64,000 nt of DNA from Macrostomum lignano (GCA_002269645.1 NIVC01000620.1:124001-188000), one strand, 5' to 3'; shown: positions 37,226 through 63,144, counted from the stretch's first letter. Numbers and translations: made by a program. The notes: generated by a model not told the origin, from the sequence alone.

Positions 37226-38060
37226 CTATTGCACAAGGCACCTACCCCCAGCTCCAGCCCCAGCCCTAGTCCCAGAATCACCATGAGCAGAAGCAGCAGC
37301 AGCAAACGTCGAGACGGCAGGAGCAGACGCAGCTGGAGTAGTTGCCGCACGTGCAGCTGCCGCACGTGCTGCTGCCACACGGGCAATCGCCGCATGTGCT
37401 GCTGCCGCACGGGCAGTGGCCGAACGAGCAGCCGCTGCACGTGCAGTATCAGCTGCAGCAGTAGCAGCTGCAGCAGGAGCAGCTGTAACAGAGGCCTAAA
37501 TTAAATTAAATATTAATTTAATTATCATTTTCAGTTAGTCACAAATTTTGTGTGCTTAAAATTAAAACGCAAGCTTTTGCAGCTATAACGTCTTTAAAGG
37601 ATTTAGTAATTAATGAGAGTAATCAAATACATTTGCACATGGACTTACGGTGCGCCGCATTAATTTACATTTTTGGGCAAAGTGCCCGAGAACTTTACAT
37701 CGATAGCATCCTACAAATTTATAATTAGGAAAAAAGGTTGCTTGCGTTAACTAAGATAATGTAGAAATATGCAATAATTTTAACAACAAATTTATGTTTT
37801 AGACTGCTAAAATTGAAAATTTAGTGTAAGCTTTACTCACGATAACTTCTGTCGCCACCACCGCGGGGGCCACCGCCGCTATTGCCGCCACCGCCGCGGG
37901 GGCCACCGCCGCCATGGCCGCCACCGCCGCGGGGGCCACCACCGCCGCCACCGTCGCCATGGCCGCCACCGTCGCCACCGCTGCCATGGCCGCCACCGCC
38001 GCCATGGCCGCCACCGGCAGGGCCGCCATCGCGGCCGAAATAAAAGTAAAAATTTGACAT
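37226..38060 (-). CDS. Three-exon Gly-rich / CCHC zinc-knuckle / Ala-rich protein (~183 aa) ending in CLVQ*
   Basis: Exons 38060-37841, 37710-37649 and 37495-37226 have GT-AG introns (GTGAGT, GTAAGT donors) with matching phases 1 and 0. The spliced frame reads MSNFYFYFGRDGG...(GGGH/GPRG)n...SYR CYRCKVLGHFAQKC KLMRRT ASVTAAPAAAA...GAGAGGRCLVQ*. Confidence 0.8.
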
Positions 38061-39734
38061 CTGAAAGCAGAAAATACTAACCAAATGACTAATCATCATC
38101 ATTCAGTTATACTAAAAATAAAACTATCTACTAATCGATGTATCTATCTATACGAATTTTGGCTTAACTTGACAATGTGTGAACCGATTTTCTTCAAACA
38201 TGCACTATTAGATCAGAAAATTTTTCGTGAGAGTAAATTTATCGTGGCTAAGAAATTGGTCAATGCTAAAACGATAAAAAGCTAAAAAGAAAAACTACTT
38301 TTCTGCAAAGGTCAAGTAGCCCTTTCCACGACAAATGCATTGCAAGAATTATATAAAATTCTCACTGAATTCTGATTCTGACAAACATTGAATCATACTA
38401 AGCATTTTATCCATATAGGTGTCTAAAAAGTATAAAAAAACATTTCACACACAAAAATCTCAAAAGACCGAGACCTAGTAAAACTAGGTCTTGTATAATC
38501 TAGCATAACGAATTTTGAAGGAATAATATATAAGTTTTATTCGTTTATGTGGTCTACTTAGTTAATTAAATTAGTGAATCGAAAAATTATTTAACTTGCT
38601 TTTACTTTACAATACCTAAATTGTCAAAGTGTGTATATAGTCGAATAGTGGTAATAAAATTCAATCAAAAGTCATTAATTACACTTGCGTCGTTCCAATT
38701 CTGTTGCCAAAACTAAGAGACAAGAGTTTTAACATGATATTCCACAGAACATAAGAATTATTATAGACTCTTGACTTCTAAAGAACGGCTTAACACCCGC
38801 AGGCTCGTGAAGCCATTGGATACGACTTTGCAGTAAATCAGATGATCACGTTGCATGCCTGGATAAGGCAGGGCAACTTTGCGGGATAAGTCCATAATTA
38901 GACACAGTTGTAATCATAAATCAAAGATTGGTTCATAAAGCAGCTATTTAAAATATTTTTTTCAAATAAAAGACTGTCTAAAACTCAAAGCGTCGTGCAT
39001 CGAATAGCTAGCTAATCGGTAGAAGAGGATGTTTTATCCATCTTAAATATTTCAAAAGTAAAATAGCTTTCGTTGGAAAGGCTAAATATTATTTCTTAAA
39101 TCAATATCAAGGCAATGCCAAACGATGCCGCTCACACTTTGACGGACCTTTACTGCAAATTTTGCGGGCGATGTTACGTGCAGCCAATTCACCACTAGAT
39201 TAATATCGATTGCACGCTTAAAGCGAATGGGCAGCACACTTTTCTGCATGCTGAATACAACAGTATACAGTGCTGCTGCGCAAGTGCAACCACCTACACA
39301 GTAGACCGCCAATGAACTCATTCTAATGAGCCACGGCAATTTGTTTCCTACCTAGGCCATAGGCCGTCGCAATATTGCAGTGCCTGCTATGCACAAACTA
39401 AGGCCGACATAAAAGTTCTGGTATTTAAACCATAAATCGATTGCCCACCTTCTAATGTGAACGAGTAGCACACAATAAGGTGCTACCCGAAGGCAACCAC
39501 GTGCGTAGCAAGCCGCCATAGTACTCATACCTAATGAGTCTAGGCAAAGAGTCGAGAGTCGTATCACCGCAGTACTGCATTGCCTACTGTGCACTAATAT
39601 AAACTTTATGAAATTCGATCGCCCACCTTCTAAGGCGCATGAGTGACACGCATCTTGCAACTGGATAACGTTTGAATAGTGTCACATTATCCGTAGGCAA
39701 AACGCAATAGAGTTGTATCACACAATTGCACATA

Positions 39735-40490
39735 AGCTTGCCGAAGTTTGCTTGCAGGAACTTTGATTGCCGAACTTTGCTTGCAGGAAATTTGCTTGCG
39801 AAGTTTGCCAGCCAAAGTTTTGCGGAACCTTAAAGAAACCTATTTTCGAGCTCTTGTGTTTCTAATTTTCATTTTCTAAGATTCGTGGAAGTCGCCTATA
39901 GTGTTATGATTTTGTATGAGGATATGGTGGATTATTAATTACATTTTATATACTAAAATATTATTAGTATATGCATTATTATACATTAGCATCACTGCAA
40001 TTATCATACCTGCTCAATCGTGCTGAAATCAGGAACTACAAAGATTTATACTGTTACCGATCCCTATCTACCTATACTAAATCGCTAAGCATTCTATATA
40101 CTATATTCTTAGAATGAAACTCTATAAGCCTAGTTTGAAAGCTTAGTGTCAAGTCAGTTTACGTCGACCCTGATAAGAATCCACTTGCAAAGCAATCAAA
40201 ACAAGCAAGCAAACAAGAAAATAATTCTGCAAGTTAACACCTTGCGATTGTGTGATTGCAAATTTCTAGAAAGCAGACATCAAAATTTCGCAAGCAAAGT
40301 TGGGCAAGCAAAATTCCTGCAAGCAAAGCTCGGCAAGCAAACTTCGGCAGGCAAAGTTCCTGCAAGCAAATTTCCTGCAAGCAAATTTCCTGTAAGCGAA
40401 ATTCCACAAGCAAACTTCGGCAAGCAAAATTTGGCAAGCAAAATTCCTGCAAGCAAAGTTCGGCAAGCAAACTTCCCGCAAGCAAACGTC
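39735..40490. repeat. Inverted clusters of ~10/20-bp GCAAGCAAA repeats (foldback/MITE-like relic)
   Basis: TTTGCTTGC units at 39735-39810 and GCAAGCAAA units at ~40185-40490. Confidence 0.7.
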
Positions 40491-40675
40491 GTACTCCCAT
40501 ATATATAACCCCTAGATTATGGCCGGTTCCGAAATCTCATCCCTAGTTTATCGCTTAATGCCGAAGCACCATTTAACATAGTTAGGAAATTTTAAAATTG
40601 TAAAATTGCAAGGAAAACAAAAAACATAACATACGAGTATTAGTAAGCAAAATGCATAACGCAGATAGTGTTGCG

Positions 40676-41218
40676 TTACCCCTGCTTATCCTGCTGCTGC
40701 TGCTGCTGTCCCGGTTGCTCCTGTCTTGGCTGGCCGTGTTGCTGCTGCGGTTCGGGATTTTTTTTCTTTTTATGCCAACAATTTTTGGCAATATGCCCTA
40801 CCTTTTTACAGACAAAGCATCTTTCTGCAATACAGAAATGATTGTTTGTAATTATTTATGCTATTTATATACATACGTGTATGTAAATATACATTTATAT
40901 TGATACAAACTTACTTTGCACCGAACCCATCCCGCCTCCTCTGCCATCTGCTCCACCACCTCCGCCCCCGCCTCCGCCTCGGCCGCCGCCTCCGCCTCCT
41001 CCTACTCTGTCGCCTCCTCCGCGTCGGCCGCCACCTCCGCCTTGCCCGCCTCCGCCTTGCCCGACTCCGCCTTGCCCGACTCCGCCTTGCTCGACTCCGC
41101 CTCGCCCGCCACCGCCTCGTCCGCCACCGCCTCGCCCGCCACCGCCTCGCCAGCCACCGCCTCGCCCGCCTTCGCCTCGCCCGCCTCCCTGCTCATTAAA
41201 ATAGAGTTTGACGATCAT
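40676..41218 (-). CDS. Two-exon RGG-rich / CCHC zinc-knuckle / Gln-rich protein (~150 aa)
   Basis: Exons 41218-40915 and 40824-40676, separated by a 90-bp GTAAGT...TTGCAG intron (phase 1). The spliced frame reads MIVKLYFNEQGGGRG...(RGGGG)n...GSVQK RCFVCKKVGHIAKNCW HKKKKNPEPQQQ...QQQQQQDKQG*. Confidence 0.82.
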
Positions 41219-42785: not shown

Positions 42786-43030
42786 CAAGTGCTGGGTGTC
42801 GCACAAACTGGCAGCCCGTGACCTGGATATCTGGCCATTCTCACTGCTGCTGACGCTGGGTTAGGAGGTTCTTCTCCACCCATATCACAGTCCAGATCTT
42901 GTGCCTACCGACTACCACCTTTTGCCGCGCTCAGCCAGTCCATGGCTGCCCACAGCCTCAAAGATGAGGAGGACTTGGAGAAGCATCTGCGTGACTTATT
43001 CGACTCTCACAACTCCGAGTGGTACCGCTG
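42786..43030 (+). pseudogene. Internally deleted mariner transposase relic
   Basis: KCWVSHKL (WVPHEL motif) is joined after about 16 codons to LG*EVLLHPYHSPDLVPTDYHL (YSPDLAPxD motif), followed by a frameshifted tail ...EEDLEKHLRDLFDS. The catalytic core is missing. Confidence 0.8.
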
Positions 43031-43879
43031 ATGGAAATTACATTGAGTAGTAATAAATTAATAAAAATAATATTAAGTTAGAATGAAGTGACTCGATATT
43101 CCTAAGGACTTTTACTACAATCATCAGATAAGCATCGTTTTTAGAAACAGGTTTTCAACTTTATGTCTCGCTGTAGCGATCGCATGCATGCCAGTCGTTG
43201 AGTACCCGTCGTTGAAAGTTTGACACCAGACCGCCCAGCAGGCGAATAAACAACTGGCACTGCGTACCACCTTGGTTGCTGTCGGTGAACATCTTGCATG
43301 TCAGGTACGCTGCAGTTGTGAATGACTTAGTTGCAACGCCCTGGCTCATGTTACATGTATATGTCAAATTGGATTACAACTTTTATCATTTAAATAAAAA
43401 ACAAATAGAGGGCGTCATACAGTCATGACAATGGTGAATAATACAAATGAAACCTTACCTGATTTGCGGTGCTTCTCGTCTTTCTAAATGTTTCGCAACT
43501 ACACGAATGGAGTACTGATGATATGGATGCGAAAGAAGCATTTTATGTACAAACAATAGAAAGAAGTGGAAAAATAAATTGTCAAAAATCTTGAAATGTT
43601 AACAATTTTGAGCTGTGGAAAAAATTCACAGACGGAACGAGAAGAATAACGAATGCATAAAAATACGCCTTAATGAATGAAATAACGCATACAATAATAT
43701 TATAGAATTATATTCATATACAGTATGTCAGTGAACCTAATCATCCCTTCACCCAATTTCAACCGGACCATATTTCATTCTAGATAGCTCGTATTGCCCC
43801 GTCTTTTCGCAATAAACCCACAGTTGCTTTAGAAGCAGCCAGCATCCGCAATTCCCAAATAATTATTTGGCCAAGAAGC

Positions 43880-44806
43880 CAAGATCCCCTCTAATCACCA
43901 AACGTATTTACGAAGCCAGGATCTCCTCTGATCAGCAGAGTATTTGAAAAGCCAAAATCCCTTCTAATCATCACAGTAATTGAGAAGCCACATTCCCATC
44001 TAATCACCACAGTATTTGAGAGCCCTTATAATCACCCAAAGTATTTGAGACCCCAAGATCCCCTCTAATCACTCAAAGTATTTGAGAGCCCAAGATCCCC
44101 TCTAATCACTCAAAGTATTTGAGAGCCCAAGATCCCTTCTAATCATCCAAAGTATTTACGAAGCCAAGATCTCCTCTGATCACCAGAGTATTTGAAAAGC
44201 CCAATCCTCTCTAATCATCACAGAATTCGAGAGCCCAAAAACCGTCTAATCACCACAGTATTTATGAAGCCAAGATCCCTTCTAATCACCCAAAGTATTC
44301 GAGAGCCCAAAAACCGTCTAAACACCACAGTATTTACGAAGCCCAAGATCCCTTCTAATCACCCAAAGTATTTGAGAGCCCAAGATCCCGTCTAAACAGC
44401 ACAGTATTTGAGAGCCCAAAAACCGTCTAAACACCACAGTATTTGAGAGCCCAAGATCCCGTCTAAACACCACAGTATTTGAGAGCCTAAGATCCCGTCT
44501 AAACACCACAGTATTTGAGAGCCCAAGATCCCGTCTAAACACTACAGTATTTGAGAGCCCAAGATCCCGTCTAAACACCACAGTATTTGAGAGCCTAAGA
44601 TCCCGTCTAAACACCACAGTATTTGAGAGCCCAAGATCCCGTCTAAACACCACAGTATTTGAGAGCCCAAGATCCCGTCTAAACACTACAGTATTTGAGA
44701 GCCCAAGATCCCGTCTAAACACCACAGTATTTGAGAGCCCAAGATCCCATCTAAACACTACAGTATTTGAGAGCCCAAGATCCCGTCTAAACACCAAAGT
44801 ATTTGA
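43880..44806. repeat. 36-bp minisatellite (AGTATTTGAGAGCCCAAGATCCCGTCTAAACACCAC)n
   Basis: Homogeneous from about 44370 to 44806 and degenerate upstream. Confidence 0.95.
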
Positions 44807-46616
44807 GAAACTATCTCCTCTAGTCCCGAAATTACGTAAGAAGCCAATGTAGTAGACGAAATTTAAAATCAATCTAAGACAAAAAATCAAAATACAAAGT
44901 AACAAAACACTTGCTTTTTCAGCACTAATACGATTCTGACAGGTCATTCGCACACTTTGTGCTATAATTTATCAGGTTGCACCTTTAAAATGCACCTTCT
45001 CGTTTCACCTTGTCAGACGTGTTTGCGTGTCAGCCCTGCAGCGTATCATTTAAGGTTTGCTGTTGTAAACCCGTGCCCTTTGCAGTTTAAGGTGTTTATT
45101 TAATTTGAATGTTCCTACACTTAAAATGCACTTTTAAGGCGAAACCGGATATAACGCTAACTATAAAGGTCCTATTCATATGACTTTAATTTGTTACTCT
45201 ACTGGGAAATAATTATCAGTAGATTCTTAATAAATAATTCTGAATGTAACTCCGACCGTTAAATATGTCGATTGAACCAATTTAGTTTACACATGGCTTA
45301 GTAGCGGATGTAGGATTTTTATTCGATAGGGATGAACAGGGCGCCTATTTATAAAGTACAATTTGGTGCCGAACACGTTCTAAAGTGCTTCCAAATCAAG
45401 GAATATTTGGTGGGGGGCTGTCAGGCACTTAAGGGCGCTATGAATCTTACTCAAATCGTGTATTGAGCTATTATTCAGTTTTTCCCACCAAAATTTCTTC
45501 CTAAAAAATCCTGCTAAATGACACTCACATAAACAATTAGAACAACCTTTAAAACTGCATGGCACTCCTCTGACTGGTTTTGTCGTTTCAACAAGCTTCT
45601 TTTTTAATTTATCAGGCATTTTGGTATAAACATTTTAGACTATACTCTCACAACAGAAAAGGAAACTACTAACATACTTATAAACTGTTGTTAAGGACGT
45701 TATAGTCTTTGAATAATTGCAATTATTGAGAGATTATTGAGCAACTACTAGAACTGTGAGTATTTTTATACTTTTCGTAATTAATGTCTTACTAACGAAA
45801 AAATAAGATCTCTTTTGTTTGTATATTTTCTTGCTCAATAATTCTTTATATGCTACATTTTAACTGGCTTAGCTACCACGATAACACCTATGCATACATA
45901 TTTAAGAAGCTTATTCAACAGACACCGAATAGTCACGCAACAGCACGAGACTTATCTAACCAACAGGCATAAGTACCCGCCAGAATTATCTGCGTAACTC
46001 AGGCCGAAAATTTATTAGACTGACACTCAATCACAATTCATATATTATCCTTGTGACCCAACAGCAAACTATTGACAGCACTTTGGCATAACTCGTCAAT
46101 AGTCTACCCTGGCACACGTGTCAGCCCCACGCTTCACAGAGTGAAAGCCTTGCGCGCTGCTTTACTTATCCATTTTATACAATATTTAAAAAATAATTTA
46201 AAAGAAATACCCGTAAATCAAACCTCTTTTTCAAATATTAAAATGAATTTAAATTCATTAAATAAACTATTCAACTTTTTGACTGATAAACTGAGCAAGG
46301 TGGCTAATAACACTGTATGGTTAATTAAAAAGTGATTTAAAACGACTTAAGACGACTTGAAATGCTTCTTTTGCTTTATACTTCCCAATCCCAATCTAAC
46401 GAAATTAAATCTGTCCTATATAGCTATTCAAAACCTAGGAGAAACGGCTATTTAAGAACAAAACACTGTACTACACTTAACACACACAAAAGCAACGCGC
46501 AAGACTCATTAAGACCGCAAACACCGTTTTTTCTCAGAGCCATTGTTTGCTCTATATTATATAGATTCGTGCACATTTGCAGTTAAAAAATGCCAAATGC
46601 TGCTGGCTCATTTCTC

Positions 46617-49298
46617 TCACAAATCTAATAATCGCTTCTGTTCATTTACCTGTGCTACAATACCGCCTGTAGAAAATAGGCGCTGAAATCTAACGAAATC
46701 GCAACAGGTAACAAACAGATCAGACAAAGCACGAACTCTACTCACGGCAGTGTAGTACAGACCTGCTGGCGGCGACTTGCGGCCCTTGCCCAGCTGTACA
46801 AACGCCTTGTCAATCGTTAGGCCTTGCGACTTGTGAATAGTGATTGCCCAGGTTAGCCTCAGCGGAAACTGATGTCTCGACAAGCTGGCGCCTCGCTGAA
46901 GCCACTGGCTTGATACTGGTAGAATTGGCACAACAGAAACTGTCGGTGCACACTCGCTGCTACTACTATTACCATCTTCTCTAGGCAGCCGCGTGGCTTG
47001 CATTGCCGGGCCATTGTAGCGCTCGAATTCAACCCAAACGCAATCGGGCAAATCATTTGGCGGCTTCTTTCCATTTGCATAGCAGATGCCACGAACCGTA
47101 CCAACCGAGCCATTCACCAGGCCATTTTGCACAGATAGATTCCGAGTCAAGATCACACGTGCTCCAATCGCCAGAAATAGTCGCCTGGCTAGGCCTGTCT
47201 CCGATTTCTGCTTGCTACTATTAGCATTGTTGCCAGTCAGCGGTTGCCTTCCAGTACAAGTTGCATTGATTATCCGCACTGGATTGTTGTCATCGACAAT
47301 TTTTCGCAGCTCTTCACAGTTTGCATTAGACACATCTTCATTTGTGTGGTACAATAGCGTGCATTTGCCATCAACATCTAGCGGTAGCATGTCTGCGGCT
47401 GCTACTTGACACTTGTCCATTACAGTCTTCCAAATGGCTTCGGTTACTTTGCCTTCGCGAAGAGACTAGAATGCTGGCAAACACTGGGCCCGTTCTATAA
47501 AGCCATCGTAAGATAAGATCGTTCTTAGCTCTATCTCCGCAGTGTAAAAGTTCCAACGTACGATCGAACTTACGCTACGACAGCTTTATAGTACGACCCC
47601 TGTGTCATTTGCTTGACGCACCTGCTTGTTTAGATAAACAACCTTTTGAAACTCTGATACACTTGATAGCCAATCGGTGTCAAATTATCTTTAGCATTCT
47701 TGTTAAACATATACAGCTGTTTTTCTTAAACGGGAGGCAGCTGAAACACATCGCCAACCAAAATGATTGATCGGCCGCCGAAATATCCTTCAAGCGTGTC
47801 TCGCTTCTCCTCAGGAAACAGTTTGCACAGACGGTTGTGCACCTTTGCCAGTGTCCTTTGGCCAACCATGCTAAACTCGTCAATGATTATGTAGCGCACA
47901 TTTGACCATACCGATTGTATGTCTGACAATGCCTTGCTGCTGCCCGAAGTCGTTGAACCGTCAGCATTAGTAGTACAGGCCGTAGTCGAAAACTTTACGT
48001 TCAACTTTAACGCTGAATGCAGTGTCTCGCCAGCAATGTTGAACGCAGCCACACCAGTCGGTGTCATACTTTGCACTTGCCCTCGCCAATCAATTTTCGT
48101 AGTGCAGCAATCAGAAAACTCTTGCCTGTTCCAGCGCTGCCATACAAAATTACTCGCAGTGGTGAAGGCATCTTTGACGACTCTCCTGCACTGCTAGTAG
48201 TGTTGTCACTATCAGCCAGCCGTTCAAGCTTGCATGCGATTCCCTTTGCTTGCTCTTCGGTTCGCCAACAGCTCCACAGTAGTACCTGCTGCCGATAGTA
48301 TTGTTCGCGCCGTTTATCGTCGCTTTCTGTTGAACGAAAAAACGGACTCACAATTAAAACTGCTTCCTTGCCGGCTAGTCGCTTCTTGTAGACAGCAACT
48401 TGTTCACCACCGCGTCTTTGTTGACGCATCGGGGGAATATAGTCCGAAAAGAGTCGATACATTGTCTCATTCTCCAATTGTGCCGGCCGATTCGCGTAAT
48501 TTTCAATGCTATTCTTGCAAACGCCTCGACTCTCAATCGCTCTAGTCTCGCCAGTTTGAACGTAGACAAACTCTCGCGACGCCTTGTACATCGGTGTCTG
48601 CAATACCAGATGCATAGCCTCTTGTGCTGAATAGTCGCGCGCTCCAACTTGCATCATCAAGTGCTGCTGAACAATGCGACTTGCAGTATTTGTTCGGCTA
48701 TACTTGTCCTGCTGCTGATTATTATCATTTTCTGCTGCATTATCAATGTCCACTGACTCCTGCTGCTGTTCCATAGAAAGATAGCGACGATTCAACTCTT
48801 GCAACTGCTCCGATTCCTTCTCTCCTTTGCTTGCATACTTGATAAAATAGCGAATCAAATCTTTGGCCGAAGAAATCATCTGAATGTCTAGGTTAGCTCT
48901 CCACATGCACAGTACTTGAGGATTGTACATGCCAATAAATTTGTCGTTGCGCTGCGTCTGAACCTTCCAGTTTAAACTCGACAGCCTCTTAGCGACAGTC
49001 GTTGTCTGCAAATCTCGCGGATATTTGTATCGACACTTCATAGAGCCGTTCTTTTCCTTTCGTAGGCACCGATTACTGCAATTTGAGTGCCTTTTGTTGT
49101 TGTGAAGAAGTGCTTGCAAATCAGCTTTATCGTCAATGATTTCGGACGGCTTCAATCGAGCCGGCTGCTCTCCTACTCCGCCAGAGGAAATTTCGCGACC
49201 GCTATCTGATTCGTCCATGCACGTGTTCCAACTGCAAATGTACTTGTCCAGAAAAGCAACCAAATCTTCTGCTTGCAAGGATTCCGAAGGACTCTGCA
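46617..49298 (-). pseudogene. Helitron/Helentron Rep-helicase (HUH Rep C-terminal half + PIF1 SF1B helicase), frameshifted and 5'-truncated
   Basis: Rep part: H-x2-C-x3-C...CRYKYP, RN...YNP...WRANLDIQ, YFIKYASKGE, RDYSAQEA. Helicase motifs: GSAGTGKS, PTGVAA, IIIDEFSM, FGGRSIILVGDVFQLPPV, RQ, GARVILTRN...GLVNG, RHQFPL...AITIHKSQG, YTAVSRV. Breaks near 48070, 47726, 47650 and 47455. Confidence 0.93.
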
Positions 49299-49525: not shown

Positions 49526-49730
49526 ATGACCAAACCATATATCTAGTATAGATTCTATGTTACTTCGCAGAAAACGGATAAAAATGCCCCTAGCCTACTG
49601 TTAGTAAGCAAGTAAGTTCATGGCCCATGTGCTAGCACGGGATTTGGAAAAAAGGGCGTCCTCATCATTATATTATTATATTAGAATGCCCGAAGAAACT
49701 TCACCAGCGATTATACCAGAGAGGTAAGCT

Positions 49731-50541: not shown

Positions 50542-53500
50542 CTAGCAATCAGCGCCCCCGTTGGGGAGCCAAAAATTCAGTACAAGTTGTTTTATTAAAC
50601 TACATGTAGCGTCTTCTTGCATTTTACCCCAGCAGTCCCTTGTAAGCCTTGACATGTCAGCAATTCCCCCCACAAGTCTTAACATATCAACTCCCCCTTG
50701 ACATTTCAGCGATGCCCCCATAAGCCTTGAAATCTTAAAAAATCTGTCTACTTTCTAACCCTAGCGTAACCCTAACCCAAACCCTAAAGTATTGACATTT
50801 CAATTCTCTTATTCTCTCTAAGAGTCATTATAGCACTACTACATCATTATAGCGATTCCCTGCAAGCCTCGACATCGTAGGGATTCCCAAATGAATCTCT
50901 TAACTTCGACATGAAGCTTCTTTTATTTTTTACATTACGCTTTATCTATCAGCGATCCGTCCCGTGAGGAGCCAACAAATAATGTAATAAAACGTTTTCA
51001 ATAAACTACATGTAGCTTCTGACTTTATCCTTGACATCTCAGCAATTCCCCCAGTAAGCCTTGACACCTCAGCAATTCCCCCAGAAAGACTTCACCTCTT
51101 AGCAATTCCCCCAGTAAGCCTTGAAATATCAGCAATTTCCCCAGTAAGCCTTGAGATCTCAGCAATTCCCCCAGTAAGCCTTGAGATCCCAGTAAGCCTT
51201 TAGATCTCAGCAATTCCCCCAGTAAGCCTTTAGATCTCAGCAATTCCCCAATAAGCCTTGAGATCTCAAAAATTCTCCCAGTAAGTCTTGAGATCTCAGC
51301 AATTCCCCCAGTAAGCCTTGACATCTCAGGAATAACCCCATTAAGCCTCGACATCGCAGCAATTAAACTCGAGCCTCGACACAATTCTCTCAGCGCAGTA
51401 ATTAGCCTTGACGTCCCAACAACCCAACTCCCCTCTCCCAAGAATTCAGCAATCCCCTTATAAGCCTTGATAACTCAGCTATTCCCTGATGAGCTTAGAT
51501 ATCTTAGCAAGTATTTAATTGATGGTTGACAGCGGTTAATCTATGATTAAACCAAAACTGATCCAAAGCCTCTAACCCTAACCCATAAGTGAATCTTGGC
51601 ATGTTAGCAATTTCCACCATGAGCCTTGAGCCTCGGCATTAAACTAACTTCCTCACAAGCTTTGTAATCTAAATTTCACCGAAAGCCTTGACCTGTCAGC
51701 AACTCCCCGTAGATCATTAGTGATTGACACGACTATCGCTCTATAATTGAACCCTAAGCCTAACCCTTAACCTGCAGCCTAATTTCAGCAATTCCCCAAT
51801 GAGCTTTGGAAATGTTGGCAATTTCCCCATGAGCCTGAAAATTGAGTGACTAACCTTTTGATATCTTGGCACTTGCATTTCAACAATTAATTTCTGCAAT
51901 TTCACAAATGAACCTTGAAATCAAAGCAATTCTCCCCAGAATGACAATTATAGCAATTCCCCTTGCGCCTTGAGATCTTAAAAATCCTCCCATGAGTATT
52001 GATATATCATTGCAATTTGCCATACATGCATTATGCTCGTAGCAATAGTCTTAGCAGTCTTAACAGTCTTAGCAATTCCCAATCAGACTTTTACGTTCGA
52101 CAGGGCGCTTCTTTAATGATTGACATAATTTATGATTTATGATCGTTTTTTCTTGCCTTTGCGTTTTCTTCTCTTCAAAAGAAGTTTTTAATAAAAAACC
52201 AATATTTCACTATAGCTTTCTGCAGTTTAGCAATGGTTCATCAGCAGTTTAGCAATGCAGTTTAGCAATGCTTCACCAGCAGTTTCACAATGCAGTTTAA
52301 CAATGCTTCACCAGCAGTTTCACAATGCAGTTTAGCAATGCTTCACCAGCAGTTTAGCATCGCTTCACCAGCAGTTTAGCAATGCTTCACCAGCAGTTTA
52401 GCAATGCTTCACCAGCAGTTTAGCAATGCAGTTTAGCAATGCTTTACCAGCAGTTTAGCAATGCAGTTTAGCAATGCTTCACCAGCAGTTTAGCAATGCT
52501 TTACCAACAGTTTAGCAATGCAGTTTAGCAATGCTATACCAGCAGTTTAGCAATGCAGTTTAGCAATGCTTCACCAGCAGTTTGACAATGCAGTTTAGCA
52601 ATGCTTCACCAGCAGTTTGACAATGCAGTTTAGCAATGCTTCACCAGTAGTTTCACAATGCAGTTTAGCAATGCTTCACCAGCAGTTTAGCAATGCAGTT
52701 TAGCAATACTTCACCAGCAGTTTAGCAATGCAGTTTAGCAATGCTTCACCAGTAGTTTAGTAATCGTTTACCAGCACTGTTTTGCACATTGCAATAATCT
52801 TTGCTTATGGCTATATTGCTTCTGGATAATCGAAACCATTTAAAGTGTTTCTGCAACTTGCAGGTTAAATTTAATTCCCTTACATATTTATTATTTTATT
52901 ATATGCGTCAGATTAGCACTGCTCTCCCCGATTAGCGCTGCTCACCCAGATTAGCAATACCCTTTGCAAATTAGCACTTACAGCAGATAAGCGCTGCTCT
53001 TGAAGCTTAGCGTAGCCCCAGCAAAAGTATATACAAATAAAATGTTAAAAATTTGCATGAATCCCCATAGGAAACAATGATTATTGTCACAAAGATAAAT
53101 TCGCTGCTTCAATGTAGATTCAAACTGCCGACCTTCTACTAAAAGCCTTATACTATTCTAAAGTTTAGTAACTTCTCACTTTGAAGTTCACCCCCCCCCC
53201 CCCCCCAGAAATCGGCAGTTATCCCCACAACAACCTGAAATTAGCTATCACTTCTAATCCCGCAAGCAGACTGCAGTCATACTCTTAGCAGTCTGCAGGT
53301 ACGAGTATCCACTTTGCTGTCTACAGCTTTCATTAACATCGGCAAACTACAATAATTCACTCAGCAGTCCGCAGTTACTCGTATCCCCTCAACAACTTGC
53401 TCTGCTATACACTCATAAGTCTGGAGGAATACCTCAGCAGTTTTTTTCAATTTTTCCCATTGCAGTCTGCATGAATGAGTCTTCTCAGCAATGATTCTTT

Positions 53501-54953: not shown

Positions 54954-55387
54954 CTAGCAATTTAAAGCCCCCGTCTTCGGGGGGCATACAGCAATGTGAT
55001 GTAACCCCCTTAAAATACTTAAGAACATAACGGTAATATACGAGTAATAGAGTGTAATAGAAAGACCATAATAATATTATTGAGCCATTGCTTTTCCGTA
55101 TCAGTCACTGGCCCAGATGCAGTGAGACGGGTTCTTCAACCGAGTAGATAGTTTTTGCCATAGACGCAACTCAAATTTTGAGCTGGGACTTTCAAAAAGG
55201 TTTCAATTCAATATATAGTATTTCAATAATTGCAACGTTTATTTAATTCGCATAGCTCGTATATTTTTGAGACGTTAATTCTACAAGGTGACATGTACGA
55301 GCGTATCTAAGCCTAGTAAAGATTACTTGCTAGTGATTCACAATAATAAAATGACTTACTTAGTATCAAACTCTAACGACTCTTGTA

Positions 55388-55802
55388 CGAGGGGTGATCA
55401 AAAAGTTCTGCAACCTCGACTCCTGCTGCACCATGACAATGCGGCACCGCACAGACCGGCCTCAACCATGGCGTACCTGGAGCAGCAGGGGGTTCAGCTG
55501 CTGCCCCATCCATCCTACTCTCTAGACCTAGCACTCTGCGACTTTTGGCTGTTCCCGAGGATCAAACCCGTCATTTTTGGGAGGCTGTTTTCACGCATAC
55601 CCTGCCCAAGCGGTACGTTCAGCTCTACAGGGTATACCAACTCCAGAGTACCATGACTGCTTTCAGACATGGTGCACACGCATGCAACGGTGCAAAGATG
55701 GTGGTGGAAAGTACTTTGAGGGAATGTGACACTGATTAGACGCCTCGGCTGCTGTAACACTGAGTTGTGAGGTCACTTGCAGAACCTTTTGATCACCCCT
55801 CG
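55388..55802 (+). mobile_element. Internally deleted mariner element (415 bp) retaining both TIRs
   Basis: TIR CGAGGGGTGATCAAAAAGTTCTGCAA / TTGCAGAACCTTTTGATCACCCCTCG, with TA on the left (TT on the right). Internal LLHHDNAAPH...LPHPSYSLDLALCDFWLFP motifs are of the DD34D type. Confidence 0.92.
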
Positions 55803-56123
55803 TTCTTAACCTTACCCTAACCTCATCTGAACAGAATTTGGAAATTTCTGCAGAAGCATCTGCCCATCCCTTACTTCAATATTGTTATATTTTATAACGT
55901 ACGCAAATAGGAATTCATGCTTGAGCTCCTCAATTGTCTGAAGATAACTGTGACGGGTCAGCAAATTGTGTTGAAATCGGTAGGCCCGGCTGAGTGAACA
56001 CTGCGCGCCAGTCACGAGTGAAGGTTATCTTCGGAATAAATTTAATTTAAAGAGTTTTAATCAATTATTAGTTGACAGTAGCTCGTAAGATATAAGATAT
56101 AACATTTGATATGGAAAACATAC

Positions 56124-58409
56124 TTCTTTGTCTCCACAGCGCACTCGAATTTTATTTATGTTCTCGTAGCCTGCAAACAATCGGTCGGAGCACTGCAACA
56201 AAATTTCATCATGTGCAGATTGGCTCGCATGCTCTGTTGCTTGGGCCACACGGACTGACTCGAAGAGTTGCTGGCTGGACACCGCCTCTTCAAACCATTC
56301 TGTCAGATCGGAATCGTTGGCAAGATGGTAGCGAATTTCAGCATCAGAACAGTTCAGCACAACGACTTGGCCGTACTCTTGGACCTGGGCCCCTTGAATT
56401 TCCAGGGTGTTGCCCACGGCCCAGTTATTCACTCGAGTTGGACTTTTTGCCCAGAATGTGCAGGACACGGAGGATGCCGAGTCATCGACCAGCATTACTT
56501 TGGCCAGGTTGACGGGAGGCCCATTTTTTCTCTGGACTTCCTTCGACGGTTCGATGTTTTTTATCACACCTCGGATGTCAACTTTTCTGTTTAAGTAGGG
56601 CAAAAGTGCACCAGTTATGGATTACAAAATCTTGGTCTTCTGTCAAACCCCTGGATTATCGGGATTAGGAATTCCCGGCCAAAGATAATGCCGGGATTAT
56701 CCATCCCGGTAAATCCAGAGTTATTCGTAATCCTGAGATCCCAAAAATTCATCTCGATCCTGGGACTAATCCTTGGATTCTGGAGTAGAATATGATCGCA
56801 GTAGAGATTTATCAATTCCCAACTACATTAAGCCAGAAATCAATAGCAAATGATTTCATGAGCTAGCTGTACTTGTTGAATTGTAACTTTCTAGGTTTCT
56901 TGTGTAATCTGCATATTGGTTTTTATTTTTTATTTTGTATAGCTACATGCTGCCGCAACAAGTCCAATCAATATTTCTTATTTCAATATTTCAGTATTTC
57001 TGTGCATGTGTGTGACTGATCGATTTTTGAAAAAAAACTGCTAAACCGATTTCGTTAGAACTTGCACTGTTCGATCAGAAATAATAGCGTGGGAAAATGG
57101 TTTCAGTTTACGAATGATATGAGTTTGTGCTAAATCAAAGAAAAATAGAGAATAAGAGGATAAGACTGACAGGTCTGACAAGAAAAAAAATTTCCAGGAA
57201 AGGAGAAAGAAGAAAGAGAGTGTTAGGTTTTGGCCGAAGAATGATTACAAATTCAAAGACAACTTTTATGAGCAGCCCTTGGCTTGCTACTTTCTATAAT
57301 GTTCGCTCGCTCTATAAGCGAGGAGTTTGGAACCTTTTTATTTTATACCACTTACGAGCATAGCTTTTGCTTCTCGATGTCGTGGTCTGTATCAAACGGA
57401 ACGAGTTTGTAACCATAGACACAGCCACAAAGTAAATTCATTTATAGCTAAGAGCTCGATAGCTCACAGAGAGGAAAGAGAGAAGAGAGGAGAGATGAGA
57501 AAGAAGAGAAAGAGGAGAGGACACAAAGCAGTAGGATTTTGCTATAGTGTTAAACGGAAATGTTAGTCAAATACTCTTGCTCATAACCGTACTGCAGCTC
57601 AGAATTAGGAACAGATAGTCAAGAGCATTTAGTAGAGATGGAATATTCGTTATTCGGATTTGGTACTCGAAAAATAATATGAATCCGAATATTCGGTATT
57701 TAGATTTGGTATTCGTGTTCGGAAACATATTGGATTCGTTCTATCTCTAGAATTTAGGCACATTATTGGTTTTAAATCCCGAAAAATCCCGGGATTCATA
57801 GATTTTTATCACGGATGCCGGAATCCCCAATACCGATAATTTGTGATCCTGGGACTATCGATCCGGGTAAATCCCGACAACCCCGACATTGATCCTAGTC
57901 CCGGGATTGCAAACCCTAGCACCGGTAAAGACTGTATCTAATAATTTAAAAATTATGAAAACCTTGAAATATTTTTAAGCACTTACTTCTTCATGGCAAC
58001 GGCAGAAAGGTCGCCGATTTTTTATACACCGCGGGTGGCCGATTGACGATCTCTTGGGTCGCTAGGAGGGTCGCATTATTGTCTACTGACAGAGTTATTT
58101 CAAGGCCATTGTCGGTGCAGTTGTAGGTCTGATTTGCAGGCTTCACCCAACCCCCAGACACTCTTACAGTGCTTGAGTCTTGGCACATGTCGTGGTGATT
58201 TTTAAGTCGCGACCGAAAACGCTCACTCGAATCTCATTCTGGCCATCAGCCAAAACAAATGAAAATACTTGGCCGTTTCCCTTGGCGCTAGTATAGTTCT
58301 TGAGCTGCGTCACTCGGGACACCAGGCCGATTATAGAACCGTCCATTAGGCCAGGCACAAAAGCTGCGATGCTCAGTTTGCTCTTAGCAGTTGTAGTATC
58401 TGTTGCCAT
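56124..58409 (-). CDS. Spliced RPA1/RPA70-like protein (two OB folds) with two homopolymer frameshifts
   Basis: Exon 58409-57987 resembles DBD-A (YTSAKGNGQVFSFVLADGQNEIRVSVF...VKPANQTY...LEITL). Exon 56586-56124 resembles DBD-B (VDIRGVI...VMLVDDSASSVSCTFW...GAQVQEY...LTEWF). The GTAAGT donor and AAACAG acceptor match in phase 2. The frame needs +1 A in A-runs near 58203 and 58021. Confidence 0.8.
56616..57918. mobile_element. hAT-like ATCCCGGGA-rich MITE filling the RPA intron
   Basis: Right TIR GATTGCAAACCCTA, degenerate left TIR TATGGATTACAA, and TSD GCACCAGT/GCACCGGT. Confidence 0.55.
57633..57749. mobile_element. Small hAT-like MITE (117 bp) nested in the above
   Basis: TAGAGATGGAA / TTCTATCTCTA TIRs and TSD GCATTTAG/GAATTTAG. 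Confidence 0.75.
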
Positions 58410-59477
58410 TGTTACAAAGAGAACAGAAAATGCTGGAAAAATAGCAGTTTAAAAATGAAATAAAAAAGGTTGGGAGACGGTTTGAGTTGCAGTTAGACAA
58501 ACTTTGAGATCATCCGAATAAAATATCTTTTATTTTATTAGCTGCACCAGACAGCTAGAGTACCTGTAATTAGGCTGGGGTGGGGCACCGGCTGAAATTT
58601 GATAACAGATCAATTAAGTTTGAAAGCTAAACATTTCTACCTGGCCATGATTTAATTTAATAATTGCTCAATTAAATTTAAAAGCCAATTTTTTCTACTT
58701 AGTCATGATTGAATTTAATAACTGATCGATTAAGTTGGGCAATCTTTACGTTTTTACCTGGCCGTAGTTAGCTCTGAAACCCACCGGCTTAAGAAGTAGC
58801 GGCAGGTCGCCTCATTGTAAAGCTGATTAATATAGCTCAGTATTCAATTCCCTCGCAGCTCACCTTTTCAACTTAAATCTGATACGTGCTGCACCTGCTG
58901 GATCAAAGTCATTAAAGACTAATTAAAGTAATTACCAAATCGAACAAAAAATACCGGCCCACCGGCTCCATTATGCGCTCGTGCGCCCCTATAAAAGATC
59001 GCAATGAGGCAAGCCAAGAGGCAAGAGCTCTGAGATTACGCTCGTATTTGTTGTCTTCGTCATTAATACTTGCATCAGCTAAGCAACAGCACCGGCCCGC
59101 AAATACGAGTATGAAGATAGTGAACAACTACACAAAAATAGAGCTACATGGCCTAAATGTTTTGTGCTGAATAAATAATTACTCTATTATTGCAACAGAA
59201 GAAATATTCTTATTGCAGTTCTTAAAACGAAATATTGCGGTTGCCGTTCGGCCAATATGCACAAACTAAGTCGCCCTGCTCGTGCTTTCCGGCCGGATTG
59301 TTGCCGCCACCGTCAGAGGCTGCGGCGTCGTTAAGCGGACGGCGGCGCTTTGTTTGAGCCGATGTCTCGCGCCTGTGGCAACCTAAATTGGGCGGAAGGT
59401 TTTGACGGCTTTTATGTTTTCTTTCTAGGATCAATATAATAATTTAGTAATTTTCGTAATTTTTCAATTCTAATTAC

Positions 59478-60170
59478 CTTGCCAGTCGACGCTTCAATTG
59501 CCTTCATGAGCACGTCGTTGCCCGCCCTTCGGTAGCGGTCTGTATGCACTTAATATGCATCAAGTGCTAATTTAGGAGTATGCTACAGACGGTCAGCCAT
59601 CAACTGTTTATCAGCGCCAGCCAAGAGCTTGAATAAAAGATATAAATGAAAGTTACTAAATTTATAAGCAATGGAAATTTATAATTTTGCATTTAGGATA
59701 ACAAAGATTAGATATTCTGTCAGTGCAGATAATTTTTATATAACTAAATATCCATAGAATAAGAACTATACGTACGAGTCCCTGGCTTGTCGATTGTAAA
59801 TTAGCTAGGTCACAATAATAAGAAGGAAGGAAATTGCTGAATCACAGTGATAAGAAGTAAGAATTAGCACACAAAAGAATTATTTCTAGCAATACTCGCT
59901 TTTGTTTCAATGAACACTCGAAAGCTTGTACATCTTACGTTATGTAACAGCTCGCTGAACCGAGTCCTATGTTCACGAAACATTCCTTCAAAGCTGACAT
60001 ACTTGAACTTAATGAATGGACTTATGTAAAAGATCCCTAAGTCGCCAATAAAACGTCACTTTAATCCCAACGCTGATTTCAAATGTAAGGGGTGTAAGAT
60101 TATATGAAGCTGACGGCCTGAATCCCACCGTCGCTACCAAATGTAAAAGCTCTCGAATTATATACACTTC
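59478..60170 (-). pseudogene. Possible decayed, intron-containing tyrosine recombinase (Crypton/DIRS-type)
   Basis: Three motifs in the expected order: LVATVGFRPSASYNLT (box I-like R), CTSFRVFIET (HxxR-like position) and ADRL*HTPKLALDAY* (H...Y box II-like). The last lies on a 150-nt phase-0 exon (59627-59478) with two stops. Confidence 0.4.
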
Positions 60171-61199
60171 AAGGAGTTAAATTTTAATCTAGTTTTAACT
60201 TTCCTACTAACGAGTAGTCTCTCGCCGATAAAAAAATCTAGCGCTAAGCCGAAATGGGCTAATCGTCTCGCGCGCCCTATAATTTCCTTGTGCTATATGT
60301 CTCGCGGTAGCTCTAGGTTTCCACTGGGGTCTTTGTCTCGCTAGACTCCTAGATTTCCGCTGAGCTCTCTGTCTCGCTAGGTCTTTGTCTGACTGCAGAC
60401 TAGCGTCACCTGGACTTTAATAGGTAAGGACTCAGCGTTTGGAGTTGATTAACTCGGCTAAACGTTCGGGAACTCTTAACGGGGCGGATTGACTGGTGAT
60501 CGCTGACAATGATCCCAAATAACTTTGACTAACGGTAGTTCGCCAGAGATCTGGCTAGTAGTCATTGGAAGACATTTCAGGCAATCTATGAGTAGCGGCG
60601 ATAGTTAGGGCCTAAGGCTATACTGCTTATATTGCACCAGCCGAAGAGCGGTACCCAGAGATGGTCTGATAGAGTGCGACCGATAATTTCTTGATAAATT
60701 GCGTTTCCTACCAAATCGGTAATTAATCCCATAGCTAAAATGTCAATCACGAAAGGTAGTTCGCTGCCACCAGTCGAAGCTATGATTAAATTGACTGAGA
60801 CAAACCGCTCTCAAAAAAGGTTTGATTAATTAAAACTGAATGACTTAAATTGTAACTTCGAAGTAATAAGTTGACAAATTTAATTATTGAACTGGTAAAT
60901 TAACTAGCACACAAGCAGAAAAATATTGATAAAAACTTAGTTGAACACTAAAAAATTTACATAAATATATGCTCGGCCTCCTGTGTCCTTACCAACACAG
61001 TCTGTTAGAGCTAATTAATAATTGCGTCTACGGCTCGACTATTTTCAATAAGTAGGAGCTTCGATAACACTAGGACTCAGTTGAGTATCTATAACTAATT
61101 AACTCACGAAGTCACTAGACAGTACAGGCTGGGCTTACACAAGCCAATGTCAACTCAGACTTGGAGCACACAGTCCGGCCAAAGAGAGGCAAGGGCCAA

Positions 61200-61238
61200 C
61201 GCGCGCGGAGTTTCAAACTGGTGCGCGCGGTATTTATA
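61200..61238 (-). promoter_or_regulatory. TATA box adjacent to a GC-rich palindrome
   Basis: Minus-strand TATAAATA at 61238-61231 next to the hairpin CGCGCGC-GG-AGTTT-C-AAACT-GGT-GCGCGCG. Confidence 0.3.
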
Positions 61239-62086
61239 CCCGCAATGTCAGTGCATTCAAACAAATAATTGACACTGTCGCGCAGTTACTGTACGTTACT
61301 AGTCAGCGCATGTGCATAAGTTTTCAGTGAATTAATTCGCATGTTTAGTAATTTCTTATTCTTCATTAGTAATTTCATAGTTAATGCGTAATCCAAGGAG
61401 CTTTACCACAACTCCCTTGGACTAATAAAAAACTCTAAAAAGATTTTTGAACTTGTTAGCAAAATATGAAAAATATTGTTTTAGTTTTGCTGGTTTTATT
61501 GACACGATTAAACAAATAAGCGATTTAGGGTGACTCCTTAGCAGCAAGAAAACGACATCAGATACAATCAGTTTAGCGTTATACGCCACGCCGAGCAATG
61601 CGTCTTCAGATGTAGAACGGCGGTCGCAGCATTTCTGTCAGACCCCATCCGGTCCACCCACATACGATCTGCGCGAGTGCGCTAGGCTGCGCACTCGCCT
61701 GGCCGTCACACGCTCGTTGAGCCGGGACGGCGACATGACTGCCTGCAGGAGGTTCTCCCGCACTTTAGCTAAGATGCGAGGGTAGCTACTAATAGTAATA
61801 CATACGAGTTAATATTTCCTTAGCCCTATATCAACTGGCTTCCCTTACTTAATTTTTTTGAAGAAGTTATATGCGTGAGTAAAATTAAACATAGTATTAT
61901 AAGTAGCATATTATTGAGCAAAAAGAGGTAAGCACGGGTGAGCAAAGATAAATATAGTATACGTGAGCAAAAATAGACATGGCAATGGTGAGCAAAATAA
62001 GCATAGGCATAGATGAACAATGGTGAACAAAATAAATATAGGCATAAGCATAGATGAGCAATGGTGTCAATTAATTATATTTATAG

Positions 62087-62941
62087 TCAGTTCATCCCAA
62101 ACTCGATTGGCAAGTTGTTTTGTACTGGCCAACCGATGAGTACCGCAGTCCTGCAGACCTCGTGTCGGAGCTGCATCTGCTGGTGCGCCCATCCGGACTG
62201 CATGACATGATGGACTGGAGGGCGTACATGACCGCCATACGCCATCGAGTCCTGCTGAGCCGGCCGCTGATTGGTGTATACCGCCGGCGGGGTCTCAGGT
62301 GCTGGTGGCTGTCGCAGTGTAGACACCTGCTGACGGTTTAGTGGTGGCACATCGGCTGATGATGGCGGCAGAGATGACCTATGCCTGGTCGGGGTCGTCT
62401 ATTCACGCTGCTGATTCGACTGCGGCGGTTTAAGCCGGATGAGCTTTGACCGTTTTGCGGGCACATACTGCGTAGTCGCAGAACCAACCGGGTATCGGCG
62501 GGTCAATGTCGTCTCTGGGACGACTGGCTTTTCTGCCTGTCGCTTTAGTAAGGCTTGCCGAGCTTCGGGGTCGTGCGGCACTGGTAGCTTTTTAATGACT
62601 ATTGACTTCAATACTGGCTTAGCACTTTTCTGGGTGTCTACCACCTCTTTCTGTTGAACTCGAAACGCCTAATAGTTCTTCTTTAGGGTGTTCACCACCT
62701 TCTGGGTGTGTACCACCTCTTCCTCTTTCTGCTGGGTGTTCACCACATCTTCCTCTTTCTGCTGGGTGTTCACCACCTCTTCCTCTTTCTGCTGGGTGTT
62801 CACCACCTCTTCCTCTTTCTGTTGGGTGTTCACCACCTCTCCCTCTTTCTGCCGGGTGTTCACCACCTCTTCCTTATCTTGGCATACATCTGTAAAATTA
62901 GCTAGCAGCTCGTCAAAAGCTATCGCGTCAAATTCTTCCAT
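62087..62941 (-). pseudogene. Single ~284-codon frame broken by two TAG stops; contains a 10-aa repeat (EEEVVNTQQK)n
   Basis: The three listed ORFs (62941-62669, 62644-62399, 62350-62087) share one frame and are separated only by single TAGs. A 30-bp tandem repeat lies at ~62700-62880. Confidence 0.65.
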
Positions 62942-63105
62942 GATTATTTCCTAGCTAACTTCTAGCTCTAAATCTAGCTCTGAATTCTATCCTGACTCCC
63001 TTCTGTCTCAAGTGTCCTTTTTATGTAGTCTTGCTCCCCCCGCTAAGAATTATTTAAACAAACTGAAAAATGAAGGCCAACAGAAACATAAAAGTAAATT
63101 ATTAT

Positions 63106-63144
63106 AGCCAACGCGTTTCGACACAAGCGGTCATCTTCAGGGCT
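63106..63144 (-). ncRNA. Minimal type I hammerhead-like motif typical of Penelope-like element pLTRs
   Basis: AGCC-CUGAAGA-U-GAC(CGCUUGU)GUC-GAAA-CGCG-UU-GGCU: 4-bp stem I, CUGANGA core with one extra U, stem II, GAAA, palindromic mini stem III, and a GUU cleavage triplet. Confidence 0.7.

Follow-up and report, generated by a model that had tools for sequence, protein, structure and literature searches.

Helitron-like remains with an RPA-like gene in a probable mosaic of repeat-rich flatworm DNA

The interval 37226-63144 of the window (the whole 64,000-nt stretch of DNA that was analysed) carries a low-complexity repeat ORF, an RPA-like gene, a Rep/PIF1 helicase (RepHel) relic and two zinc-knuckle genes, all on the minus strand, among which lie a MITE-like insertion, a pair of mariner relics and several arrays of satellite repeats (Table 1). 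A sequence-only reading of this DNA had described a co-oriented minus-strand array running from a hammerhead through the repeat ORF, a putative tyrosine recombinase, the RPA-like gene and the RepHel to the zinc-knuckle genes. The five genes and their common strand are real; neither the hammerhead nor the recombinase was found. The co-orientation is itself unremarkable, the repeat ORF, the genes of Helitron origin and the two tandem zinc-knuckle genes counting as ~3 independent units that would share a strand by chance with a probability of ~0.25.

Table 1. Features of the interval and its immediate surroundings, with positions counted from the first nucleotide of the window
Feature	Position	Strand	Remarks
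CUGAAGA...GAAA string	63116-63140	-	read as hammerhead; not a ribozyme
Low-complexity repeat ORF	62090-62950	-	single 287-codon frame, two in-frame TAG
Proposed tyrosine recombinase interval	58440-62089	-	no detectable protein domain
RPA-like gene	58409-55930	-	RPA70 DBD-A + DBD-B
RPA-like exon 1 (DBD-A)	57987-58409	-	L002 alignment; tblastn with M. lignano P0212 aa 1-133
Nested MITE-like insertion, ~1.25 kb, imperfect inverted ends	56640-57890		inside RPA-like intron, absent from L002
RPA-like exon 2 (DBD-B), intact	56124-56586	-	Pfam REPA_OB_2; L002 alignment
Probable third exon of RPA-like gene (short C-terminal tail)	55930-56046	-	similarity to L002
Mariner deletion derivative	55387-55803	+	27-nt inverted ends
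Satellite arrays between RPA-like gene and RepHel	51029-52764		30/60-nt unit 51029-51510; 35-nt unit 52221-52764
224-bp interspersed repeat, copy B	49299-49522	-	abuts truncated 5' edge of Rep frame
Rep/PIF1 helicase relic	46620-49298	-	Pfam PIF1 2.7e-13, Pif1_2B 2.6e-7
36-nt satellite downstream of helicase	43874-44809		tandem repeat
Second mariner transposase relic	~42865-43060	+	'HPYHSPDLVPTDYHL' by reading; no Pfam match
Zinc-knuckle gene A	40676-41218	-	zf-CCHC
Zinc-knuckle gene B	37649-38060	-	zf-CCHC
224-bp repeat, copy A	36690-36912	-	96.4% identical to copy B

The RepHel relic retains the two-tyrosine motif (YxxKYxxK) of Rep, 'IRYFIKYASKGE', which aligns with 'VIEYCSKYATKSE' of P0002, and a PIF1-type helicase fused downstream of it; together with the Pfam matches to PIF1 and Pif1_2B, this bears out the proposal that rolling-circle (Helitron-type) material is present. 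Frameshifts near 48070 and 47500, together with in-frame stops near 47727 and 47630, disrupt the helicase. Homologues begin with an HUH motif, 'RGSPHVHG', whose counterpart is missing from the window: searches with homologue proteins upstream of 49300 revealed the HUH/DUF6570 half of Rep in no frame, and the copy is 5'-truncated. Its nearest homologues (P0001, P0003 and P0005; 30-35% identity) adjoin Helitron_like_N and DUF6570, the latter in L001, L004 and L005, and the best relative in the protein database was at most 47% identical. By these alignments, the nearest relatives of the RepHel appear to be DUF6570-bearing Helitron-like elements of the HLE2 type, DUF6570 having been reported to be specific to HLE2 (HELIANO survey, PMC11417382). 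From the family, we infer that in a live element the HUH-Rep domain would nick one strand at the element end and be bound to it through its tyrosines, that the PIF1 helicase would then peel this strand off 5' to 3', that the single strand would probably be coated by an RPA70-like protein comprising the DNA-binding domains DBD-A and DBD-B, and that the circle would reinsert without target duplication. The present copy cannot transpose by the Helitron route: its Rep has lost the HUH half, and frameshifts and stops interrupt its helicase.

In the RPA-like gene, Pfam REPA_OB_2 was matched at 56064-56621 on the minus strand (E=2.7e-11), and tRNA_anti-codon and REPA_OB_2 are the Pfam families of the RPA-like protein. 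The reading frame begins at DBD-A, yielding RPA70 DBD-A and DBD-B without an N-terminal domain, as expected of a Helitron-borne RPA-like protein, and an intact relative matched DBD-A/B of human RPA70 (PDB 1JMC) with E=9e-16 over both domains. Compared to the related locus L002, exons 1 and 2 were 83% and 85% identical in nucleotide sequence, with dN/dS values of 0.18 and 0.25, respectively, and the intron (57986-56587) was found in L002 as the same GT..AG intron of ~85 nt without the insert; the family has thus evolved under purifying selection with its intron conserved. Compared with L002, exon 1 has lost a single nucleotide at two places, near 58203 and near 58020; given their position in A runs, these deletions could be assembly errors. 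The segment taken as a third exon, probably correctly, was 78% identical to L002 2452-2627, and the tail of P0212 is alike by eye.

The RPA-like family is small and multicopy, with 55 matches among 1.84 billion representatives and two paralogues within one sample; no relatives were found in JGI metagenome contigs. Closest to the protein of the window were M. lignano RPA-like proteins next to HLE1-type helicases, at 38-53% identity over aligned segments. In the M. lignano contig L006, whose domains (STPR, OTU, Helitron_like_N, PIF1) are of the HLE1 type, the RPA-like gene lies 3 kb from the helicase and convergent with it (downstream, opposite strand); in L008, also from M. lignano, it lies ~0.3 kb downstream of the helicase C-terminus on the same strand; and in the window it lies upstream of an HLE2-like helicase on the same strand. 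RPA-like genes were thus found beside helicase remains at all three long loci examined, in agreement with the earlier suggestion that the gene accompanies Helitron material. The sequence-only reading had asked whether the RPA, recombinase, RepHel and CCHC modules recur together: RPA beside helicases does, in an order and orientation that vary by locus, and the zinc-knuckle genes do not (0/7 related loci).

The combination of RPA and RepHel is a described Helitron/Helentron architecture (PMC11417382, PMC4067079), to which the present pair may be assigned since an RPA-like gene also stands beside RepHel in M. lignano contigs. The HELIANO survey reports an enrichment of RPA on the upstream side of RepHel in HLE2 and on its downstream side in HLE1 (PMC11417382). 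Like HLE2 (Helentron/Helitron2), the window has a Rep tyrosine motif with a PIF1 helicase, nearest homologues marked by DUF6570, tandem-repeat arrays inside the region and, upstream on the same strand, an RPA-like gene restricted to DBD-A and DBD-B, the make-up of the 358-aa RPA of mite Helentrons (PMC4067079). Unlike HLE2, it is devoid of the HUH/DUF6570 half and of an endonuclease or OTU domain, its helicase is broken, 6.7 kb separate the RPA-like gene from the RepHel, and 12-16-nt inverted ends, a 3' stem-loop and a T-T target could not be demonstrated; its RPA gene moreover has introns, in contrast to the intron-less mite ORF. With the canonical Helitrons (HLE1; plants, L006, L008), the window shares the closest RPA-like proteins, but its RPA gene stands upstream of the helicase relic and not downstream, the relic has no BLAST similarity to the L006 RepHel, and no hairpin + CTRR end was found.

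Termini shared by the modules, which the earlier reading had proposed to define, could not be delineated. The search for terminal inverted repeats between the region upstream of the RPA-like gene and that downstream of the helicase yielded a single 14-nt pair with a mismatch, which we estimate to be at about chance level, and neither hairpin + CTRR ends nor a convincing stem-loop were found; of the HLE2 end signs (12-16-nt inverted repeats, 3' stem-loop, T-T insertion), this single decayed copy thus offers only the chance-level pair. As no termini were found, the extent of any element is undefined. The RPA-like gene and the RepHel relic may share an origin, with roughly even odds between a single HLE2-type element (RPA upstream of RepHel) and two adjacent Helitron relics. 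The one-element reading is weakened by a mismatch of types: the closest RPA relatives occur in HLE1-type contexts, whereas the helicase relic resembles HLE2. BLAST detects no similarity between the RPA-like gene of the window and that of L004, an HLE2 relative. It is possible, if rather unlikely, that the RPA-like gene is a semi-independent module moving between unrelated Helitron lineages in macrostomid flatworms, which would imply that, inside a single genome, rolling-circle elements have repeatedly exchanged or captured a functional accessory gene.

The repeat ORF and the zinc-knuckle genes are present on the minus strand as had been described. The former is interrupted by TAG codons at 62671 and 62401, leaving a first open segment at 62950-62672, and holds a 30-nt tandem unit repeated 5.8 times at 62702-62874; no credible Pfam family was found in it. 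Similarity to the N-terminal STPR-type repeats of Helitron transposases (L001, L006) was considered and rejected, there being no Pfam STPR and no BLAST match, as was an alternative genetic code for the two TAG codons, since the standard code leaves the other long ORFs (RT, ISXO2-like) uninterrupted and frameshifts affect the helicase as well. Zinc-knuckle gene A consists of a Gly/Arg-rich exon (41218-40915), a phase-1 GT-AG intron and a CCHC exon (40824-40676), and gene B of at least a Gly-rich exon (38060-37841), a phase-1 intron that precedes the knuckle at the corresponding place and a CCHC exon (37710-37649). The C-x2-C-x4-H-x4-C motif reads 'CFVCKKVGHIAKNC' and 'CYRCKVLGHFAQKC', and the Pfam zf-CCHC matches of 2.5e-4 and 8.1e-5 jointly amount to 9e-7. 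The two genes are spliced paralogues with a common intron position and phase. Our sample comprised a single genome window and a small number of related loci; at the seven of these that were compared for module recurrence, there was no match to the zinc-knuckle genes, to the repeat ORF or to the 224-bp repeat.

Both mariner relics lie on the plus strand, and their earlier description as later insertions holds. The arms of the deletion derivative (55387-55413 and 55777-55803) are 27 nt long and 96% complementary, and a transposase C-terminal motif, 'HDNAAPH...HPSYSLDLALCDFWLF', can be read in it, the short remnant not being scored by Pfam. In the 224-bp repeat, neither inverted ends nor a target duplication were seen; its identification as an RNA gene or SINE head was rejected for want of an Rfam family.

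The string read as a hammerhead is not one. Rfam gave no match to a hammerhead covariance model at gathering score over the window and none at E<=10 over 36000-64000. The core CTGANGA..GAAA occurs 7 times in the window versus 4.6+-2.2 in shuffled sequences and is thus no commoner than chance, the local fold is weaker than that of shuffles (z=+1.77), and by direct reading a U follows CUGAAGA where the G-C pair opening helix II is expected. Matches to the Rfam families isrG and Afu_254 at 37.3-37.5 kb were discarded, as they fall on a GC-rich 15-nt repeat, on both strands and far below gathering score. The tyrosine recombinase fared no better: Pfam profiles, which very divergent types such as those of Cryptons may escape, matched no family at E<=1 in any of the three minus-strand reading frames of 58440-62110, and no recombinase in the ORFs 62090-62668 and 61641-61808 or in the other minus-strand or the plus-strand ORFs of the interval. 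A recombinase catalytic domain (R-H-R-Y) thus appears to be missing from either strand.

We read the interval, with a probability of about 0.8, as a mosaic and not as a single element. The repeats that the window shares with M. lignano place this repeat-rich DNA in that flatworm or in one closely related to it. The RPA-like gene and the RepHel relic are the remains of Helitron-like rolling-circle transposons. The MITE, the mariner relics and the satellite arrays would be later additions that stretched the distances between genes, the zinc-knuckle genes a paralogous spliced pair of cellular type unrelated to the Helitron remains, and the repeat ORF a low-complexity frame of its own, interrupted by two stops. 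As it stands, the interval is ordinary repeat-rich flatworm genome.

Part of this mosaic could be assigned differently if the RPA-like gene were a domesticated or lineage-specific host gene lying 6.7 kb from an unrelated Helitron fragment. Its dN/dS of ~0.2, its conserved intron with flanks alignable to L002, the annotated gene models in M. lignano, the ordinary host genes within 10 kb in L008 and a 74% identical RPA relative from SRR24204725, set against no RepHel relative above 47% in the protein database, would suit such a gene, but it lacks the N-terminal domain F, domain C was not detected, it is multicopy and remote from cellular RPA70 (the 1JMC match above), and helicase remains accompany it at every long locus; we consider this assignment improbable. 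Less probable still is a 12.6-kb Helitron chimera with a direct 224-bp repeat at each boundary (minus strand, 49522 to 36690), in which the repeat would be a terminator-like end whose bypass, the accepted Helitron capture route (PMC6431247), brought in the truncated RepHel along with a satellite and the zinc-knuckle pair as cargo. The copies are 96% identical, lie in the same orientation, start and end at the same points and have no target duplication, and one abuts the Rep truncation point exactly; yet the repeat has no terminal hairpin + CTRR or inverted ends and is unmatched in related loci, a short interspersed repeat occurring twice in 64 kb of DNA so rich in repeats is nothing unusual, and the zinc-knuckle genes look complete and spliceable, not like fragments. 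A giant ~26-kb rolling-circle or composite element carrying every module from hammerhead to zinc-knuckle genes, as the sequence-only reading had envisaged from the common strand of all recognisable genes in 37.2-62.9 kb and as Helitrons reaching tens of kb by capture might allow (PMC6431247), is already largely refuted and hardly credible: it is unsupported because two of its six modules (hammerhead and tyrosine recombinase) do not exist, and against it also stand the missing shared termini, the zinc-knuckle genes and repeat ORF recurring at no related locus, the ease with which ~3 units share a strand, and whole-gene Helitron capture being described as exceptionally rare (PMC6431247). The alternative of neighbours sharing a strand by chance, which the sequence-only reading had itself named, is closer to the evidence.

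Likeness to Terminons/Penelope-like elements (PMC6431247) is confined to a superficial one, the long co-oriented multi-ORF array; unlike these, the interval has no reverse transcriptase (36-64 kb), GIY-YIG domain or hammerhead. With Cryptons or other tyrosine-recombinase elements there is no demonstrated likeness, no recombinase domain having been found on either strand by Pfam. A hammerhead/recombinase/Rep super-element is thereby removed as a false lead. A limited literature search found no Helitron descriptions in this flatworm group, to which the mosaic contributes a dead Helitron-like copy not described before, together with a family of RPA-like accessory genes; the occurrence of this family beside three kinds of Helitron helicase, in three arrangements, bears on how rolling-circle transposons acquire and exchange accessory genes. 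The only RT in the window is of non-LTR type, at 29.5-31.3 kb, its database matches being only 51-54% identical. Nucleotide-level repeats are common to the window and the M. lignano contig L006.

We found no support for the proposal, made in the sequence-only reading, that 37226-63144 holds the minus-strand remnant of a single giant rolling-circle or composite element running from a hammerhead through a repeat ORF, a tyrosine recombinase, an RPA gene and a RepHel (Rep plus PIF1 helicase) transposase to zinc-knuckle genes, although the observations behind it were partly confirmed. Two of the six modules were absent, the termini were not found, and recurrence was only partial. Across seven related loci, RepHel and RPA were the only components to recur, apart from a non-LTR reverse transcriptase (RT) in locus L005 that matched the RT of the window, which lies outside the interval; neither the zinc-knuckle genes nor the repeat ORF had a counterpart in these loci. 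The search for shared termini yielded a single 14-nt inverted pair with one mismatch, which we estimate to be at chance level, and no hairpin plus CTRR ends or convincing stem-loop. Whole-gene capture by Helitrons is, besides, described as exceptionally rare (PMC6431247). The genes of the interval do lie on the minus strand, but with the Helitron genes counted as one unit, the zinc-knuckle genes (a tandem pair) as another and the repeat ORF as a third, only some three units are independent, and the probability that these share a strand by chance is ~0.25; their co-orientation thus does not exceed chance. Two mariner relics are indeed on the plus strand, opposite to the array.

The hammerhead was negative by Rfam, pattern frequency and fold alike. 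No Rfam hammerhead match was obtained at the gathering score in the whole window, or at E<=10 within 36000-64000. The string CUGAAGA-N14-GAAA at 63140-63116 was one of seven such strings in the window, compared to 4.6±2.2 in shuffled sequence; the surrounding 121 nt folded more weakly than shuffles (z=+1.77), and direct reading places a U after CUGAAGA, where helix II would be expected to start with its conserved G-C pair. A tyrosine recombinase was not detected by Pfam on either strand: 58440-62110 returned zero families in all three minus frames at E<=1, other minus-strand ORFs yielded zf-CCHC alone, and plus-strand ORFs matched no family. The repeat ORF, in contrast to these two modules, exists but is unremarkable, with 287 codons in one frame, a 30-nt unit repeated 5.8 times, two in-frame TAG codons and no credible Pfam family. 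Divergent from it across a 500-bp GC-rich spacer is a plus-strand ORF that extends past the window end and may be the start of a further gene or element.

The RPA-like gene is genuine, its exon 2 matching REPA_OB_2 (Pfam, 2.7e-11). Its intact relative aligns with the DNA-binding domains DBD-A and DBD-B of human RPA70 (PDB 1JMC, E=9e-16), the N-terminus beginning directly with DBD-A. Identity between the window and L002, a genomic Logan contig, is 81-85% over the exons and 72-78% over ~0.5 kb of flanks, with a dN/dS of 0.18 in exon 1 and of 0.25 in exon 2. The intron occupies the same position in both, measuring ~85 nt in L002 and harboring in the window a ~1.25-kb nested insert with imperfect inverted ends. 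Exon 1 of the window copy carries two frameshifting 1-nt deletions (58203 and 58020), reflecting either a recent pseudogene or assembly errors; because both deletions fall in A runs, the usual site of long-read assembly errors, the pseudogene call is provisional.

The Rep-helicase likewise exists, but is dead: the tyrosine motif and PIF1 domains are present, together with frame shifts near 48070 and 47500 and stop codons near 47727 and 47630. Its alignment to relatives starts just past their HUH motif, and the region upstream shows no HUH or DUF6570 trace, being occupied instead by a 224-bp repeat. The top database relatives are just 30-35% identical to the relic, and three of them adjoin DUF6570 and Helitron_like_N. 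In the HELIANO survey, DUF6570 is specific to the HLE2 (Helentron/Helitron2) group, and RPA is enriched on the upstream side of RepHel in HLE2 but on its downstream side in HLE1, the canonical Helitrons (PMC11417382). Mite Helentrons encode a 358-aa RPA comprising DBD-A and DBD-B alone (PMC4067079). The HLE2 layout is matched here, where an A+B RPA-like gene precedes an HLE2-like RepHel on the same strand, and the Helitron-with-RPA core is of a kind already known.

Whether this core derives from one element or from two adjacent Helitron relics is about even, since the nearest RPA relatives reside in HLE1-type contexts whereas the helicase relic is HLE2-like, and since the RPA-like gene present in L004, an HLE2 relative, shows no BLAST similarity to that of the window. 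An end-bypass chimera bounded by the two 224-bp direct repeats, which are 96% identical, share start and end points, show no target duplication and enclose the RepHel relic and both zinc-knuckle genes along with a satellite and a mariner relic, is conceivable in that one copy adjoins the 5' truncation point of Rep exactly, but is very improbable given that the repeat is devoid of Helitron-end features and inverted ends, and matches no Rfam family and none of the seven related loci.

An exhaustive profile search of 1.84 billion representatives showed the RPA-like family to be small, with 55 proteins at E<=1e-3, the closest members being short A+B proteins. Two of these are annotated M. lignano genes and a second paralogue is present in the sample of L002; the family is therefore multicopy. 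In each of the three long loci examined (the window and the M. lignano loci L006, contig NIVC01004209.1, and L008), an RPA-like gene adjoins a Helitron helicase, and the arrangement differs among the three. The helicase of the L006 Helitron is truncated by a satellite, and the RPA-like gene of L008 begins ~0.3 kb past the PIF1 C-terminal ORF, on the same strand. The association of this family with several Helitron lineages in Macrostomum is the sole thread that we consider worth following up. Ordinary host genes (HMG box, HLH) are located within 10 kb of the L008 pair.

Coordinates of features in the window and in two M. lignano loci
Locus	Feature	Position	Strand	Details
Window	Repeats common to window and L006	8365-9624, 9857-11190, 11292-11867, 15217-16136, 27047-27361, 38174-38395, 50541-50787		nt identity 76-91%
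Window	ISXO2-like (IS1595-type) DDE transposase	20184-21281	-	366-aa open frame plus zinc ribbon; Pfam 1e-24
Window	Non-LTR element within satellite array	28049-33492	-	RT ORF 605 aa, 29494-31308; RNase H 28853-29740
Window	224-bp direct repeats	49522-49299, 36912-36690
Window	GC-rich 15-nt tandem repeat	37343-37485
Window	RepHel relic	49298-46620	-
Window	RPA-like gene	58409-55930	-
Window	Repeat ORF	62950-62090	-
Window	ORF at window end	63446-63960	+	weak SAP-like motif, then coiled-coil-like stretch in a different frame
L006	Helitron	14720-19531	-	STPR repeats, OTU protease, zinc-finger region, Helitron_like_N (158 bits), PIF1
L006	Annotated RPA-like gene	10001-11648	+	convergent with Helitron, 3 kb apart
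L008	PIF1 C-terminal ORF, then annotated RPA-like gene	9041-10908	+	Pif1_2B 2.4e-17

Both zinc-knuckle genes were borne out. Each has an exon rich in Gly and a CCHC exon, which a predicted GT-AG intron of phase 1, falling right in front of the knuckle, separates and which splice in frame; the common position and phase of the intron identify them as paralogues of cellular type. The 15-nt tandem repeat gave spurious sub-threshold Rfam matches to isrG and Afu_254 on both strands and contains a Cys-rich pseudo-ORF; it may have been taken for part of a zinc-knuckle gene.

The window as a whole is eukaryotic DNA that is rich in repeats and has short GT-AG introns. It shares satellites and interspersed repeats with L006, a contig of the M. 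lignano assembly GCA_002269645.1 (prefix NIVC01), and can therefore be assigned to this flatworm or to a near relative of it; window 8365-8611 is 91% identical to L006 6417-6664, and window 11505-11867 is 89% identical to L006 20452-20801. The non-LTR element is embedded in a ~247-bp satellite array (28049-28834 and 31386-33492) whose copies are 94-100% identical, and the top database relatives of its RT are just 51-54% identical.
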